From Podarcis melisellensis (Eukaryota), in assembly GCA_964234715.1 (NCBI GenBank), contig OZ174275.1: a DNA stretch of 64,000 nt, one strand, 5' to 3'. Positions 10,118 to 60,795 of this stretch are shown here, in pieces; within the stretch, counting starts at the first letter, position 1; each line of letters begins with the position of its first letter. Below the pieces are notes generated by a model. That model worked only from the letters and a program-made list of their open reading frames with translations, made no database searches and was not told where the DNA came from. Position numbers and translations under genes: made by a program.

Positions 10118-10899
10118 TCCCAATACAATACAGGCTGCCATGTCTCAGGGCCATGGCTCTGCTCTGCCAAAAACCACCTTCACACCATTTCACTGCTTGT
10201 CCTGAGGTCCCTTGTGCTGGCACTTGTTTGAATGAAACCTGTGGAAGATACTAAGCCTTTAAGGTGACACACAGTCTAAGACCGCCTGTGAATAGGCAGT
10301 TTTCAAAGACTATGCCTGCATCCAAGGGATTAAGCTGGCTTGCCCCATCCTGTACTGAAGGGTCATCTTTGCTATTTGAAGCTAGATCATAGGGCAACAT
10401 CCAATGTCAAGTGCTGCTCAGAGCAGACTCCCTTGAAGCCAATGCAATCTAACAAAATCAGCCCATTTATTTCAGTGGGTCTAACTCCAGGTATGGAGCA
10501 GCTTGATATCACTTCTAGTATTTTCCAAACAACTTGAGGGGAATATGCCTAATGCATCTCATAAGCAGGACGACTGCACAAGGGCTCTCACAATATGGGT
10601 TTTCCTTCTGCTTGTCTTGAAACCAGCTATGGAGGCGTGGAGGGAGCATAGATATAGCCGAGCTAGTTAGAGAGAGGTGCTAACAACACTACGGTTGCAG
10701 GTTTGACAGCTTCATATTTCTGCATTGTAGGGAATTGGACGACATGGTCATCAGCGTCCCTTACAATTCCGTGATTCTACAAAACTCCCAGAAGAGTGCA
10801 TAGGGGAAGCTGAAATGCTCGTGCAGGTGAGTCATGTGTTGTTGAATTCCCTCCAGTGCTTTATACTACATTATTTGTACAGCTGCTATTGAAGGTTTA

Positions 10900-11252
10900 G
10901 GGATGCGGTCTTGGGCTTGCTGATCAGAAGGTCGGTGGTTCGAATTCCTGTGACGGGGTGAGCTCCTGTTGCTCAGTCCCAGCTCCTGCCAACCTAGATG
11001 TTCGAAAGCACACCAAAAAGTGCAAGTAGATAAATAGGTACTACTATGGCGGGAAGGTAAACAGCGTTTCCATGCACTGCTCTGGTTTCGGTGTTCCGTT
11101 GCGCCAGAAGCGGCTTAGTCATGCTGGCCACATGACCCGGAAAAACTGTCTGCAGACAAATGCCTGCTCCCTCAGCCTGTAAAGCGAGATGAGTGCCGCA
11201 ACCCCCGAGTCGTCTGCGACTGGACTTAACTGTCAGCGGTCCTTTACCTTTT
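10900..11252 (+). mobile_element. Sauria SINE
   Basis: cttgctgatcagaaggtcggtggttcgaat...gcaagtagataaataggtac...ttagtcatgctggccacatgacccgg...cctttacctt tail; TSD TATTGAAGGT (10887-10896, 11253-11262). Confidence 0.9.
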
Positions 11253-53990: not shown

Positions 53991-55300
53991 AATGTAGAGA
54001 CCATTTCATGGCACAAACCCATCAAAGTGGAGCACACTGTTAAACAGAATTAAAACACAGGAACACGAACTTGTAAGAACAAAATCAATTCTAGACCAAT
54101 AAAGCCACCCATGCAAACGCTTAAAAAAACACGAAACATTTCCTCAAATATAAAATTGATCTTCCATAAACGACTGAGTTGCACCTCAGGGAAAGCCTTC
54201 CCAAACAGAAATGTCTTTAGCTGGTGTCTACACAACACCACACTCAGTGCCTGTCTGATTTCAGCTGGTAACGGATTCATGAGTGCTGGAGAGGCAACAC
54301 TAACTTCCAGGACAGGTTAAGCACACCTCTGATATAGCAGTAGCAGCAGCAGCAGCAGTAATATCTAGCAAGATGAATTTACGAAGGTGAGTGTCAGTCA
54401 TGGTACCTTTTACTGGCATCACAACCAGCAGTATGTGAGGCAAAATTAACAGTAAGGCAAAGGCTCCTGTCAACCTCTTTTGAAAGTTAGGAAACTGACA
54501 GTATGATCCTTTGCATGTATCTTTGGAAGTAAGTCCCTCTGTGCTCAGTAGGGTGTACTCCCAGGCAAGTGTACTCTACATAATATTGCAACATGAGAGT
54601 GGGAGGGAGGCAGCCATGTCTTGAGAGTGCCAAAAATTGGGAATGTGATTTGCCCGATACGTCTTTTGTGCTTCAGGGCAAGAAAATGTGCTGTTCCGAT
54701 TTCTCTTTCTGGGACATCAGGGGCTTCCAAAGCTAGGCTACAACATCTAGAAGGAAGTCCAACGCAATTGCCACACATGATACATTGTGCATAGCTACCT
54801 CCCTTGCCCCCATAGCTACAGGAGAGATATTTAAAAATAATACATGATTGCGAAGAGCCTGTACCTTAAACATCTCTGTTTGCCCAGCTTGAGAACTGGA
54901 AGAAGTCAGCATGTGAGTTAATATGATGCCTTTATTTGCTATAATAAAAAACGCAGTTTGCAGGATTTTCTGAATGCAGTTACTACTCCAGTGCAATAAT
55001 GGAATGACCTGCATGAATCCATTTCGTAATAAAGAATATAATTACATTAGAATTTGATAGTGTAACTTTAAGCCTACATTCTTGTACGGCTGTGTTGTAT
55101 TTAGTGAAGGGCTTTCCCACTCTTCTAAAAGTCCATGTTGATTGTGTTATATCCTATAGTGCAGCTCTCCGGTCTGGAAGAGGCTTGTGTGTCCTGTTCT
55201 TGCCTAATAAAACCAGCATGGAGCAAATCCATGGGGAAATACTGTACATGGGCTTTAACTGAGCAGAGTCAATTGCTGCCACCATGGCACCATTGCCATA

Positions 55301-55683
55301 GGGGTGCGAGTGGTGCAGTGGTATAAACCACTGAGCCTCTTGGCTTGCCGATTGGAAGGTCGGCAGTTCAAATCTGTGGGATGGGATGAACTTCTGTTGC
55401 TCTGTCCCAGCTTCTGCCAACCTAGCAGTTCAAAAGCACGCCAGTGCAAGTAGATAAATTGGTACTACTGCGGCGGGAAGGTAAACGGCGTTTCCATGTG
55501 CTCTGGCTTCCATCACGGTGTTCCATTGCACCAGAAGCGGTTTAGTCATGCTGGCCACATGACCCGGAAAGCTGTCTAGACAAATGCTGGCTCCCTCGAC
55601 CTGGAAAGCGAAATGAGAGCTGCACCCCATAGTTGCCTTTGACTGGATTTAACCATCCAGGGGTCCTTTGCCTACCTTTACCT
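55301..55683 (+). mobile_element. Sauria SINE, full length
   Basis: Head ggggtgcgagtggtgcagtggtataaaccactgagcc through ACCTTTACCT tail; colinear with the 10900 copy. Confidence 0.9.
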
Positions 55684-58417
55684 AATGCAGGAGACAGAAC
55701 CAGTTCTTGGTGTCTAAGCAAAAGGACAAACAACCCTATTGCTCCAACACTGAAACCCTAGTATAGATCATATGTTCTGTTGCTGGAGCACAGCATCCAG
55801 CCCAGAAGGCATATTACATAACCAACTGTGTATAAATATAGTTATTTTTGTAGAGCAGATAAAAGTCAAGGAGTTTGACTCAGCATTCTACTTAAGCATG
55901 TATTTAACACTAAGACACTAAGAGCATAACTGAATCCCCTTGGGATTGAATCGCAAGGGCTTAGCTGAATCAGGTTCTTAAGACTATAGACGCTATAAAG
56001 TAGGCAGAGTAACATCATGGCCATCTGCAAGATTCCCAATATCCTAATAGATACCACAAATAGCAACAGCCTTTTTTGACCGCAGTGCAGGAAGCCCTGG
56101 CTCCTCACTCACAACTGAACAATGAAAAGCTAATGGCTGAATATCTAAGGGCTCTTTAAGACCTTTTTTCACATATTTGTCTTTTATTTGTAGCAAACAG
56201 TTTCCATATAGACTGCTTCAAGGAAGTCTCATTTTTCCAAGCAATCAAAAGACTTTATTTTCCAGTTCAGAAAATGTGATGCTTCTCCCAGACAGCACAA
56301 TAATTGCTGTTGCAGTTTAATTGTGGAATATGGCTGTGTAAGGGTCATAAGCATTTCTTGTGTGCATTTAAATATGCATTTACTGACCAGCAAAATACCT
56401 CTCAAATTCCATTAACTACTCAAATACCTGGCGATAATAGTTTTTTTTAAAGAACTCTTTCTTTGGAAAGTCTGAAAATGTTAAAGGTTGTTTTGATAAT
56501 AATTGCCAGAGATTTGTTTGCTTGTCTATGCATAACAGGTGTTCACATTTGATACCATCACTGCCAATGGGCCAGATTCAACTTTGTTGTTGCGCTAGCA
56601 GAAGCCAGCACACTAAGTCCTGCTAGCGCAAGAGGGCACTGTGGTCAATGAGCATACAGGAAAGGTCTTAAAAGAGGCTCTTGTTGACTTGCAGACCCAC
56701 CACAATGGCTTCCGCCATCATGCCAAGAATGTTACGATTCCACAAAGATTTGCCACAGAAGAACCTAGCATAGCAATCAGGGCCAATTATGAGATTAACT
56801 ATGCCATGAAATATATCCATTAATCTTTTAAACCATTGCCGTTGTTGCTGCTCTCTGATTTTATTTTGTTTCTGCATTCCTTTTAGCCCAGCTGGTGACC
56901 TCTAAATGCTTTTGACCACAACTCTCATCAACACCACAGCCGACATAACTGTGCTGGCTTTGGCTGATGGAAGTTATAGTCAAAAACATCTGGAGGGCGC
57001 CAGGTTGGCAAAGACTCATGTAATCTACGTGATCCTCCCCAGCATTTGAGATGCACTAATGATGAGGACCGGCTACAAATTATATCCTTCACTGAGGTAG
57101 TTTATCTTCCTATTTCTCTGCAAGAGGTGTGTGCAGCCTCTTTCCTCTGTTGTCCTTTCAAAGATGAATGGCAAGTTAAAAGATACCTGTTTGAAGAAAA
57201 AAAAATTGCTTGCTGATTGTCTTTCTTTTTAAAAAACAATATTGATTTTATTGGGACCAGTTGCTTTAAATACTGCCAATTTTATTCATTTAAAGCATTA
57301 CAATAAATAAAACTAATAGCAAATTAAAAAACCCTAAAAATCAGAGCCATCAATAAAAAGCAGCAGAATAAGAGATTACAATTAAAAACCTCCACTGATT
57401 TAAAAGAGAAAGCAGGTAATATATATTACTACAATTTTAATTTTTTGAATTGTTCACCTATTTGAAACTTCACAGGGTTGTTGTGATGATCAAGAAAACC
57501 TAGAAATTGTACTCTGTCCCTTGGAGTCTTTGTTTGTAAAGGTAACTAAGGCAGGCTAGGAATCAATATGGGCCCACTCAACAATCAATAGTTTTTTGGG
57601 GGGGGCTAGAAGCCTCTTTGGTCAGATAGCACTTATTAGGTAGAGCCAGAGATTTGTGGAAATGGACCTCACCATTCTAGATGCATGACATAACATGACC
57701 AGTGGATGGTTGATTGAATTTAGCATGCCAGCCCTACTCATGATAGACAATCAAGTAACCGAGGCTTAATTAACCTTAAATCCTACCTGTCAGGCCTCTG
57801 GAAACTTGCCCAGCGCCTATGCCAAACAACCGCCAGTAAACAAAGTTAATTCTTTCCCATTAATAAGAGGTGACATTTACTACTCACATCTCCTGTTGCT
57901 TTTTGCTACCATTACCCAATCCCTAAGCACTTTTGATGATCAACCATGATTTTAGCCTAACAAATAATGCAAATTTACAGTTTTTGTGGCAAGGGAGTCA
58001 AGCACTTCCTTCCCTCCCCCCACCATGTGAATATATATTTACACACAAACACAAGTTCGCAGAAACGGGATTGGAAGTCTAATTGTTTCCAGAAATTTGC
58101 ATTGCGAATTATTTTCTGAAGCTGTGTTTCACAAGAGGCAATGCTAAAGATAAATATCCAAAGTCAAGCCTATCGTTATCACTATGATAATTAAGCACAC
58201 TTGCACTCACTATGCCTTATTTAGTCTACTTTGGAAACAAAGACTTTGCAATAATTTTAGAATCTCTCTCCAAAGACACACAAGGCTGCAGGCCATGAAG
58301 GAGGTGAACGGAATTAGAGAAGAGAATGTGAGATGAATTTAGGTGGAGAATGGGGACAGGAAACAGCATAGAGGGTTGCGGAGCTAGCTGTAAGGGAAGT
58401 TTTAAATGTTTTATTGC

Positions 58418-58425
58418 TTTCTTTC

Positions 58426-58488
<63 letters not shown>

Positions 58489-58568
58489 CTTCTTCTTCTT
58501 ATTACTCTGGGAAACCACCCAGATAGGCAGAGTATAAATAATAAATTATTATTATTATTATTATTATT

Positions 58569-58606
<38 letters not shown>
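58418..58606. repeat. (TTTC)n and (ATT)n(GTT)n microsatellites in an L2-like tail
   Basis: Direct reading. Confidence 0.9.
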
Positions 58607-58616
58607 CATTGAGCAG

Positions 58617-58760
58617 GTGTGGTGTAGTAATCAGTGTATTGGACTTGAACTGGGGATGCCGGGTTCAAATCTCCACTCAGATGTGAAGCTCACTGGGTGA
58701 CTTTGAGCCAGTCACTATCTTTTAACCAAACCTACTTCCTTGTGCTGCTGTCATGATACA
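58617..58760 (+). mobile_element. MIR/Squam3-like SINE fragment
   Basis: tggtgtagt...gggttcaaatctcc...ctgggtgactttgagccagtcac. Confidence 0.65.
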
Positions 58761-58918
58761 ATGGAAGAAACAATGCATGTGCACTGAGCTCCCACTGACA
58801 ACAGCCAGTTGGGCCATGTTCAGGATGTTTTGTTTTTGGATCTATACGGGTTTGCTGACTGCAGTGGTCACATTGTTGCTGAAGGTTTTTATTATTATTA
58901 TTATTCATTACAAATATA

Positions 58919-59290
58919 AGGTAAAGTACCCCTGGACGATTAAGTGCAGTCGAAGGAGACTCTGGGGTTGTGGCGCTCATCTTGCTTCCAGGCCGAGGGA
59001 GCCGGCATTTGTCCACAGACAGCTTTCAGGGTCATGTGGCCAGCAAGGGATGTGGGTGGCTCTAAACCACTGAGCCTCTTGGGCTTGCCAGATCAGGTGG
59101 TCAGCGGTTCAAATCCCTGTGACGGGGGAAGCTTCTGTTGCTCTGTCCCAGCTCCTGCTTACCTAGCAGTTCGAAAGCATGCCAGTGCCAGTAGATAAAT
59201 AGATATCACTGCGGCGGGAAGGTAAATGGCGTTTCCGTGCTCCCTGGCTTCTGTCACGGTGTTCCTTTGTGTCAGAAGCGGTTTAGTCAT
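58919..59290 (-). mobile_element. Sauria SINE with inverted 5' portion
   Basis: 3' third on - strand (58919-59045) joined to the 5' two-thirds on + strand (59047-59290); TSD TCATTACAAATATA at 58905-58918 and 59287-59300. Confidence 0.9.
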
Positions 59291-59499
59291 TACAAATATA
59301 GCATAGAGCTGCATATGAAAATGTTCTTTAATGAAATGACTACCAAACCACAACACTAATAAAATGCTGAAAGTTAAATAAATAGAAATGAAATAGAAAT
59401 GAAACCAGGCTGGGCAAGTGGCAGAATTAATTATTGCACAAAATCACCAAGTTTATACTGGAACGGATGTATTTTTATTTTAAACTATTATTGTTTAAA

Positions 59500-59705
59500 T
59501 GCACCCTTCTGCAAATGAGCTTAGGATGACATGTGTGTATACAGCCCTGCATTTTGCCTCACAAGAACCCTGCAAAGTAGGCTAGGCTGAGAGATAGGGG
59601 CTGGTCCAAGGTTACCCAATGAGCTTCATGGCAGTGGGGTGGGGGGATTTGAACCCACGTCTTCCTGAATCTTAGTCCAATTTTCTAACCATTACTCCAA
59701 CCCTG
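59500..59705 (-). mobile_element. MIR/Squam3-like SINE
   Basis: cctcacaagaaccctg...ggtccaaggttaccca.tgagcttcatgg...gatttgaaccc...tctaaccattac. Confidence 0.65.
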
Positions 59706-60538
59706 GTTCTCTGCACATTTGCTGCCCTACTTTTCTAGAAAGGTGGTTGTGGTTAGCAGTACTCTCTCATGACTCCTTTTGCACCAACTTTCCTACATGC
59801 ACTCTGAGTGACATGCAAGGGCTGCCTGCCCCCTTTTGGCATTAACAGTCACTTCTGAGAACATCAGGAGCCTCTATTTTCTAGTAGAGTTTATTGGTAG
59901 TTCCAGAAAATGGGTATTTTCAACTTTTTAACTTTCCTGTCTGGTACTTAGTTACTACTATGAATACTTTGAAATGGTCCCCTGCCTTCTTTTTATTTAT
60001 TTTTTAAAACTTCTTTCTACAGTCTTGTTTAGAACTCACTTGCAACACTGTGTTGTTTGCTTAGATACAAAGCAAGGAGGCCAGAAAGGTTGTTACAGGT
60101 TTACAAAAGAGATTTCCCTCAGCTCTTAAAGGGCCACATGTTTGAATGTTGCCTTGCACACATGAAATGAAGCAAAAGCTCCATGAGAAAGAATTCAGGT
60201 TGAAACAGGCTTCTCCCACTGGGAAAAAACATCACAGAAGATTGTTTCTTCATTAGATTACTGACTCTGCAATCCTATATATGCTTACTCAGGGAGTAAG
60301 GCCCATGGCACTCAGTGCAGTTTTCTCCCAAGTAAGTGTCTATGGAACTGCAGCCTTAATAGGACTTACGCCTAGATAGACTTAACTGAATTTCAAACTA
60401 TTATATTTGTAATTTTTGGCTTTTAAAATATGCTTCTTTTATTTTTATCTGTAAGTTTCCTCCCATATAATGTTTTGATACTATTCTATTGCATGCAATT
60501 TTTGATGTGGCTGAAATATATCATGTTTATTTACTGCA

Positions 60539-60795
60539 CCCGTTGCTCCTGCCAACCTAGCAGTTCAAAAGCACGTCAAGTGCAAGTAGATAAATAGGTA
60601 CCGCTTCAGCGGGAAGGTAAAAGGCATTTCCGTGCGCTGCTCTGGTTCGCCAGAAGCTGCTTAGTAATGCTGGCCACATGACCTGGAAGCTGTCTGCGGA
60701 TAAACACTGGCTCCCTCAGCCTATAGAGCGAGATGAGCGTGCAACCCCAGAGTCACCTGCAACTGGACCTAATGGTCAGGGGTACCTTTACCTTA
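60539..60795 (+). mobile_element. Sauria SINE, 5'-truncated
   Basis: cccgttgctcctgccaacctagcagttc...ggtcaggggtacctttacctt; flanking direct repeat TACTGCA. Confidence 0.88.

Follow-up and report, generated by a model that had tools for sequence, protein, structure and literature searches.

Twin priming, in which both ends of a cut DNA prime the copying of one RNA, is well known for mammalian L1 elements. Inversions of the 5' part are present in ~18-31% of L1 insertions (PMC2912911, PMC12016303), and ~70% of the 5'-inverted L1 copies exhibit a microhomology of 2-5 bp at the outer end of the inverted piece (PMC2912911). The target-site duplications (TSDs) of inverted L1 inserts are 10-20 bp long, and a long overhang is thought to be necessary for the second priming (PMC4245944). 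For Alu, 5'-inverted insertions have been counted as 1/5,554 (PMC2912911) and, in the germline, as 1/5,936 (PMC12016303), and the cause of the large differences in inversion rate between the types of elements is still called unclear (PMC12016303). When human L1, zebrafish ZfL2-1 and Nimb-2_DR were assayed in human and chicken cells, inversions were restricted to L1 in human cells, apart from a single Nimb-2_DR insert in the chicken line DT40; the authors tied the inversions to long (10-20 bp) overhangs and found inversion to be dependent on both the LINE and the host (PMC4245944).

Sauria SINEs have been described as having a TSD that starts with T, a 3' end shared with Bov-B LINEs and a signature in the form of a T-run ~10 nt upstream of the TSD (PMC6007223, PMC13295347), while their tail in Podarcis muralis is (ACCTTT)1-2 (PMC13295347). 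The TSDs of RTE elements range from 7 to 15 bp and are mostly <=13 bp long (PMC6007223). Inversions are not discussed in these two papers on the insertion signatures of Sauria SINEs and Bov-B (PMC6007223, PMC13295347), and the literature that we searched, which leaves out most subscription journals, contains no report of twin priming by RTE/Bov-B elements or by their SINEs.

In the 64-kb stretch of lizard DNA analyzed here (hereafter: the window) there are four copies of one tRNA-type SINE, one of which, at 58919-59290, is a composite, with the front two-thirds in flipped orientation relative to the tail. We propose, with a probability of about 0.8, that this composite is the product of a single retrotransposition of one Sauria-type tRNA-SINE RNA (~375 nt), completed by twin priming. 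The features on which the following analysis is based are:

~10899-11249, plus strand: SINE copy with a head deletion (copy 10909); ~28 nt of the head (A-box region) are absent; 10-12-nt TSD TATTGAAGGT
55300-55684, plus strand: full SINE copy (copy 55300); no TSD of at least 6 nt was found
58905-58918, no strand: left copy of the TSD of the composite, TCATTACAAATATA, an exact 14-nt direct repeat, directly left of the SINE tail
58919-59045, minus strand: 3' part of the composite, non-inverted, canonical SINE positions 250-374, with the tail ...GGGGTACTTTACCT adjoining the TSD
59045..59046, no strand: inversion junction, ...CCAGCA/AGGGATG..., where the 5' ends of both pieces meet
59046-59290, plus strand: inverted 5' part of the composite, canonical SINE positions 1-250, from AGGGATG... 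to ...GGTTTAGTCAT
59287-59290, no strand: microhomology TCAT; the first 4 nt of the right TSD are the same as SINE positions 247-250
59287-59300, no strand: right copy of the TSD, TCATTACAAATATA, an exact 14-nt direct repeat that overlaps the end of the plus-strand piece
60545-60793, plus strand: 5'-truncated SINE copy (copy 60545); truncation near position 105-111; 7-nt TSD TACTGCA

We take the element to be a Sauria SINE (Squam1 / Sauria_POM type; reference Repbase Sauria_POM / GenBank FJ158974). A pol III B box, GGTTCAAATCC, is located at 59106-59116 in the plus-strand piece, and an A-box-like motif, TGGTGCAGTGG, is present in copy 55300; neither ARAGORN nor Rfam called a tRNA in the head of the SINE, where the B box is seen. 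In the plus-strand piece, ~7 nt of the A-box region (59060-59068) are absent compared to copy 55300 (GGGTGGC---TCTAAACC). The tail of the composite reads ...TACTTTACCT(T), copies 10909 and 60545 both have CCTTTACCTT, and copy 55300 has CCTACCTTTACCT. Copy 10909 has the sense-strand TSD TATTGAAGGT, copy 60545 has TACTGCA and the composite has TATATTTGTAATGA, so that TA stands at the start of the TSD in all three SINE copies that have one. A T-run was not found at the distance of ~10 nt upstream of the 5' TSD; the composite has TTTT at -18 to -21, and copy 10909 has TTT at -11 to -13. This signature is a statistical one and is not demanded of every copy. P. muralis DNA in the supplement of PMC13295347 contains the body sequence of this SINE, with ...TTAGTCATGCTGGCCACATG... 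included, as unlabelled copies in the flanks of Bov-B records. Judged from the sequence, the element agrees with the published description of Sauria SINEs in its body and B box, in its (ACCTTT)-type tail and in having TSDs that start with TA.

The sequence-only reading of this stretch had proposed that the two oppositely oriented SINE pieces are complementary parts of one element, that the minus-strand piece starts at the continuation of the plus-strand piece and ends in an ACCTT tail, and that the inverted copy extends to the very 5' end of the SINE. All three proposals were borne out by blastn searches and by the alignment. With 55300-55690 as the query, positions 19-250 matched 59056-59290 on the plus strand with 83.9% identity, and positions 250-374 matched 59045-58919 on the minus strand with 82.0% identity, while the MAFFT alignment A1 carries the match of the plus-strand piece back to the head AGGGATG. 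Copy 10909, used as another comparison, gave an identical split, with subject position 11122 common to both matches, and is 83.1% identical to the minus-strand piece. The plus-strand piece ends with ...GGTTTAGTCAT and the reverse complement of the minus-strand piece starts with TGCTGGCCACATGAC; the normal copies read ...GGTTTAGTCATGCTGGCCACATGAC. Measured against two independent normal copies, the pieces overlap by 1 nt (T250) and otherwise nothing is missing or duplicated; as they share only this nucleotide, they are complementary parts of one element. Fold-back (snap-back) copying was ruled out, the pieces being complementary parts of the element rather than duplicates.

The two pieces have diverged to the same extent from the normal copies, with identities of 80-84% and 82-83%. 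The head at the inner junction (AGGGATGTGGG...) has the same first nucleotide as in both normal copies compared (55300 and 10909), the former reading CCAT/AGGGGTG at its 5' end and the latter having TATTGAAGGT (the 10-12-nt TSD) followed by AGGGATG. The inversion junction itself (59045/59046) displays a microhomology of 0 or 1 nt and <=1 extra nucleotide. A self-comparison of the whole 64-kb window revealed the composite pattern at no other place.

The perfect 14-bp TSD that had been said to bracket the unit is indeed an exact repeat (58905-58918 and 59287-59300), which matches in 17/18 nt when extended, and its first 4 nt (TCAT) are, as also stated earlier, SINE sequence at the break point (positions 247-250). 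An anchored exact repeat of at least 14 nt at such spacing occurs at 1.5e-5 of random window positions. Depending on how the microhomology is assigned, the length of the TSD is 10-14 bp, and the predicted empty site reads ...TTATTATTATT CATTACAAATATA GCATAGAGC... No TSD is present between the two pieces; a single one surrounds the whole composite. The possibility that a 5'-truncated copy was inserted beside a 3'-truncated one in two independent events is ruled out by this single 14-bp TSD spanning both pieces, by the absence of an internal TSD and by the coinciding break points; besides, it would involve a 3'-truncated SINE without the tail required for target-primed insertion. Together with an assembly artefact, which will be considered below along with the contigs of other organisms, we regard this explanation as extremely unlikely.

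When read on the minus strand, the locus comprises the right flank, TATATTTGTAATGA, the reverse complement of SINE 1-250, SINE 250-374 with the tail, TATATTTGTAATGA again, and the left flank. The inverted part starts on this strand at SINE position 250 or 246; its break-point end touches the 5' TSD, and the 5'-most end of the element is located at the inner junction. The 3' part with the tail is in the sense orientation and adjoins the 3' TSD. The same arrangement is given for the twin-priming layout of 5'-inverted L1 in PMC2912911 and PMC4245944. The sequence of this locus itself displays the layout, a TSD with its microhomology, break points that abut, and an inverted piece reaching the canonical 5' end; the earlier claim of a twin-priming signature holds in that the geometry, the single TSD, the 4-nt microhomology, the abutting breaks and the 5' end match the model.

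According to this model, the target site would have been ...TTATTATT CATTACAAATATA^GCATAGAGC..., and the LINE endonuclease would nick its plus strand after ...AAATATA, with the resulting 3' end priming cDNA 1 on the ACCT(T) tail; the left TSD on the plus strand, with its 3' end ...ATATA-3', is the presumed primer of this first cDNA. A nick in the minus strand 14 bp away would leave two 14-nt 3' overhangs. The minus-strand overhang, ...GTAATGA-3', could pair by 4 nt with UCAU (247-250) in the same RNA and, annealed in this way, could prime cDNA 2 (the complement of SINE 246 down to 1), which would run to the 5' end of the RNA. cDNA 1, extended from the tail, would be halted at position 250 upon meeting the duplex of primer 2 and the RNA; position 250, where cDNA 1 ends, is exactly where such a duplex would begin. 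Both cDNAs together would cover the whole RNA and overlap by 1 nt, their 3' ends would be joined almost bluntly (CCAGCA/AGGGATG), and the second strands would be filled in, which would turn the overhangs into the 14-bp TSD. In these terms, 58919-59045 would derive from the tail-primed cDNA 1, and 59046-59290 from cDNA 2, for which the other DNA end would have served as primer.

The composite could be also envisaged as a normal SINE insertion, with the sense strand on the minus strand, in which exactly the first 250 nt were later inverted at the level of DNA, through the rejoining of broken ends or through a replicative template switch aided by the ATGA/TCAT microhomology and a palindrome. One of the break points does lie inside a palindrome with a 6-bp stem, a 4-nt microhomology is also typical for replication-based rearrangements, and there is no ortholog that dates the inversion relative to the insertion. 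However, the second break would need to hit precisely the boundary of the TSD with the SINE's first nucleotide, and no nucleotide has been lost or gained at either junction, save for the 1-nt overlap. An RNA-templated event is favored because a reverse transcriptase running out of RNA template would naturally stop at the 5' end of the element, whereas a DNA rearrangement has no such reason to end there; for a later inversion, this end point would be a coincidence of ~1 in several hundred, on top of junctions without any loss. In our opinion, a later inversion is very unlikely, and twin priming during the insertion provides the better account of the locus.

The break point (59287-59290) is located within the 5' arm of the SINE palindrome GTCATG-N7-CATGAC, which is kept in 2/3 normal copies, while copy 60545 reads GTAATG in the 5' arm. 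The corresponding 6-bp hairpin is found in short local folds of those two normal copies and is absent from the global fold; folding of the whole SINE RNA was not better than that of shuffled sequences (z = -1.18). The target overhang ATGA has the same letters as the 3' arm of the hairpin, and would therefore compete with it for the 5' arm. It is tempting to speculate that the hairpin favored priming at this site, and the palindrome may possibly be a preferred site of internal priming in this SINE.

As to the enzyme, the reverse transcriptase most likely came from Bov-B, a LINE of the RTE clade; we make this assignment because the literature names Bov-B as the partner of Sauria SINEs (PMC6007223, PMC13295347). 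No Bov-B 3' end that could serve for comparison is present within the 64-kb window. The TSD of the composite (10-14 bp) falls inside the range known for RTE elements (7-15 bp).

Twin priming could have also occurred on two SINE RNAs, or could have been carried out by another LINE (e.g. a lizard L1 or L2), which would make the locus uninformative with respect to RTE. Twin priming on two RNAs has been proposed for inverted U5/L1 chimeras (PMC4476161), but in the composite the break points coincide to the nucleotide, as expected with one template, the odds with two being ~1 in several hundred. With regard to another LINE, several LINE clades are active in lizard genomes, one paper assigns an L2 partner to AnolisSINE2, and the T-run signature is not at its usual distance. 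Conversely, the tail consists of ACCT(T) instead of poly(A), the TSD, which has TA at its start, falls with its 10-14 bp within the RTE range of 7-15 bp, and two papers state that the 3' end of Sauria SINEs is shared with Bov-B (PMC6007223, PMC13295347). We consider both of these variants unlikely and prefer twin priming on a single SINE RNA by a Bov-B enzyme.

For comparison with other organisms, Logan contigs from four runs, labelled as four different organisms (A, E, G and I), were aligned on the region 58200-60000. The contigs that cover the junctions between the element and its flanks are:

59233-59813, record 7: right junction
59261-59632, record 15: right junction
59259-59630, record 23: right junction
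records 29 and 30: right junction
58687-58987, record 27 of organism I, 321 nt with 2 mismatches: left junction, comprising the flank, the left TSD and 68 nt of the tail piece

The right junction, i.e. SINE position 250 of the plus-strand piece followed by the TSD and the right flank, was found in contigs of all four organisms (A, E, G and I), and the flanks of the contigs listed above diverge from the window by ~0.6-2.7%. As both flank junctions are found in independent contigs, they are genuine, and the insertion is old, having taken place before these organisms diverged. The sequence-only reading had suggested a search for the empty site in relatives. The search was carried out and no such site was found, nor was there an element-skipping joint among the listed joints of the four runs, since the insertion is already present in each of the four relatives examined, as shown by the right junction. 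Scans of metagenome contigs for the exact patterns of the empty site and of the inner junction likewise gave no match, and these blanks carry no weight.

Concerning an assembly artefact, SINE repeats are difficult to assemble, and the inner junction (59045/59046) is not seen among the listed independent contigs: none of those from the short-read runs of the four organisms bridges it, since short-read contigs break inside the repeat. On the other hand, both unusual flank junctions (the tail with the left TSD, and position 250 of the plus-strand piece with the right TSD) occur in contigs of other organisms, by which misassembly of the flanks is ruled out. Thousands of contigs from other SINE copies have been also aligned to the region, and in several of them, from the four organisms, 59290 and 59042-59045 are connected with opposite strand orientation, which shows independently that normal SINE copies have these positions side by side.

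The contigs also revealed small differences outside the element. At 59376-59390, the window differs from the contigs of the relatives by a deletion of 11-15 nt in a AAATAGAAATGAAATAGAAATGAA tandem stretch. All four relatives have 7 extra nucleotides (CACATCC) behind 59501, which were therefore probably lost in the lineage of the window, and organism I alone has 22 extra nucleotides behind 58811.

The composite is flanked by inverted copies of another tRNA-SINE-like family, at 58620-58748 on the plus strand and at 59560-59690 on the minus strand, with the B-box-like motifs GGGTTCAAATCTCC and GGTTCAAATCC. The arms 58684-58737 and 59575-59628 of these flanking repeats are 78% complementary. A larger inversion, considered on account of the joints 58714/59593 on opposite strands, was rejected, as these joints are an alignment effect of the two inverted flanking copies. 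Farther upstream, a hairpin-like stretch of ~100 nt (56897-57000) matches unrelated microRNA models on both strands with 27-31 bits, against thresholds of 75-90; rather than a microRNA, it is probably a MITE-like element with inverted repeats.

The mechanism proposed here is a known one, and what would be new is its occurrence on an RTE-partnered SINE in the germ line of a reptile, which is apparently unreported. As a natural case from a lizard, with a 14-bp TSD and a published partner of the RTE clade, the locus fits the view that a long 3' overhang, and not L1 itself, permits the second priming. We are inclined to believe, with slightly more confidence than an even chance would warrant, that 5' inversion by twin priming is not specific to L1 or to mammals, and that it is a regular low-frequency outcome of Bov-B/RTE retrotransposition in the squamate germ line, both for the LINE and for its 375-nt SINE. 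If this is true, squamates, in which several LINE clades are active in one host, would allow for testing whether the inversion rate is set by the LINE (i.e. by the length of the TSD and overhang) or by the host. The composite alone is one anecdote; it is valuable as a starting point for surveying whole squamate genomes, in which L1, L2, CR1, RTE and Penelope elements occur side by side.

In comparison with the known systems, the composite resembles twin-primed L1 copies in its order of parts (TSD, inverted upstream segment, non-inverted 3' segment with the tail, TSD), as well as in the 10-20 bp class of its TSD, the outer microhomology of the 2-5 nt class and the cDNA ends that are adjacent on the template. 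It differs from them in that a pol III SINE of 375 nt, bearing an (ACCTTT)-type tail, takes the place of the 6-kb element with poly(A) as the template, in that the presumed enzyme is that of the RTE-clade Bov-B and not L1 ORF2p, in that the host tissue is the germ line of a lizard, and in that the inverted cDNA reaches the very 5' end, with nothing deleted. With the very rare 5'-inverted Alu copies it shares the nature of a short non-autonomous SINE, the 5' part of which was inverted during insertion in trans. However, Alu is mobilized by L1 via its poly(A) tail, whereas the SINE described here presumably has a LINE-derived tail and a "stringent" RTE-type partner. The Nimb-2_DR insert from DT40 cells (PMC4245944) is likewise a case in which a LINE other than L1 produced a 5' inversion in a cell that is not mammalian, with a TSD of the ~12 bp class, but it comes from another LINE clade and from a cell-culture assay, and concerns the LINE rather than its SINE. 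Finally, in the U5 snRNA/L1 chimeras (PMC4476161) the second cDNA is also primed internally on the RNA from the top-strand overhang, with a microhomology; two different RNAs are involved there, whereas the two pieces of the composite sum to one RNA.
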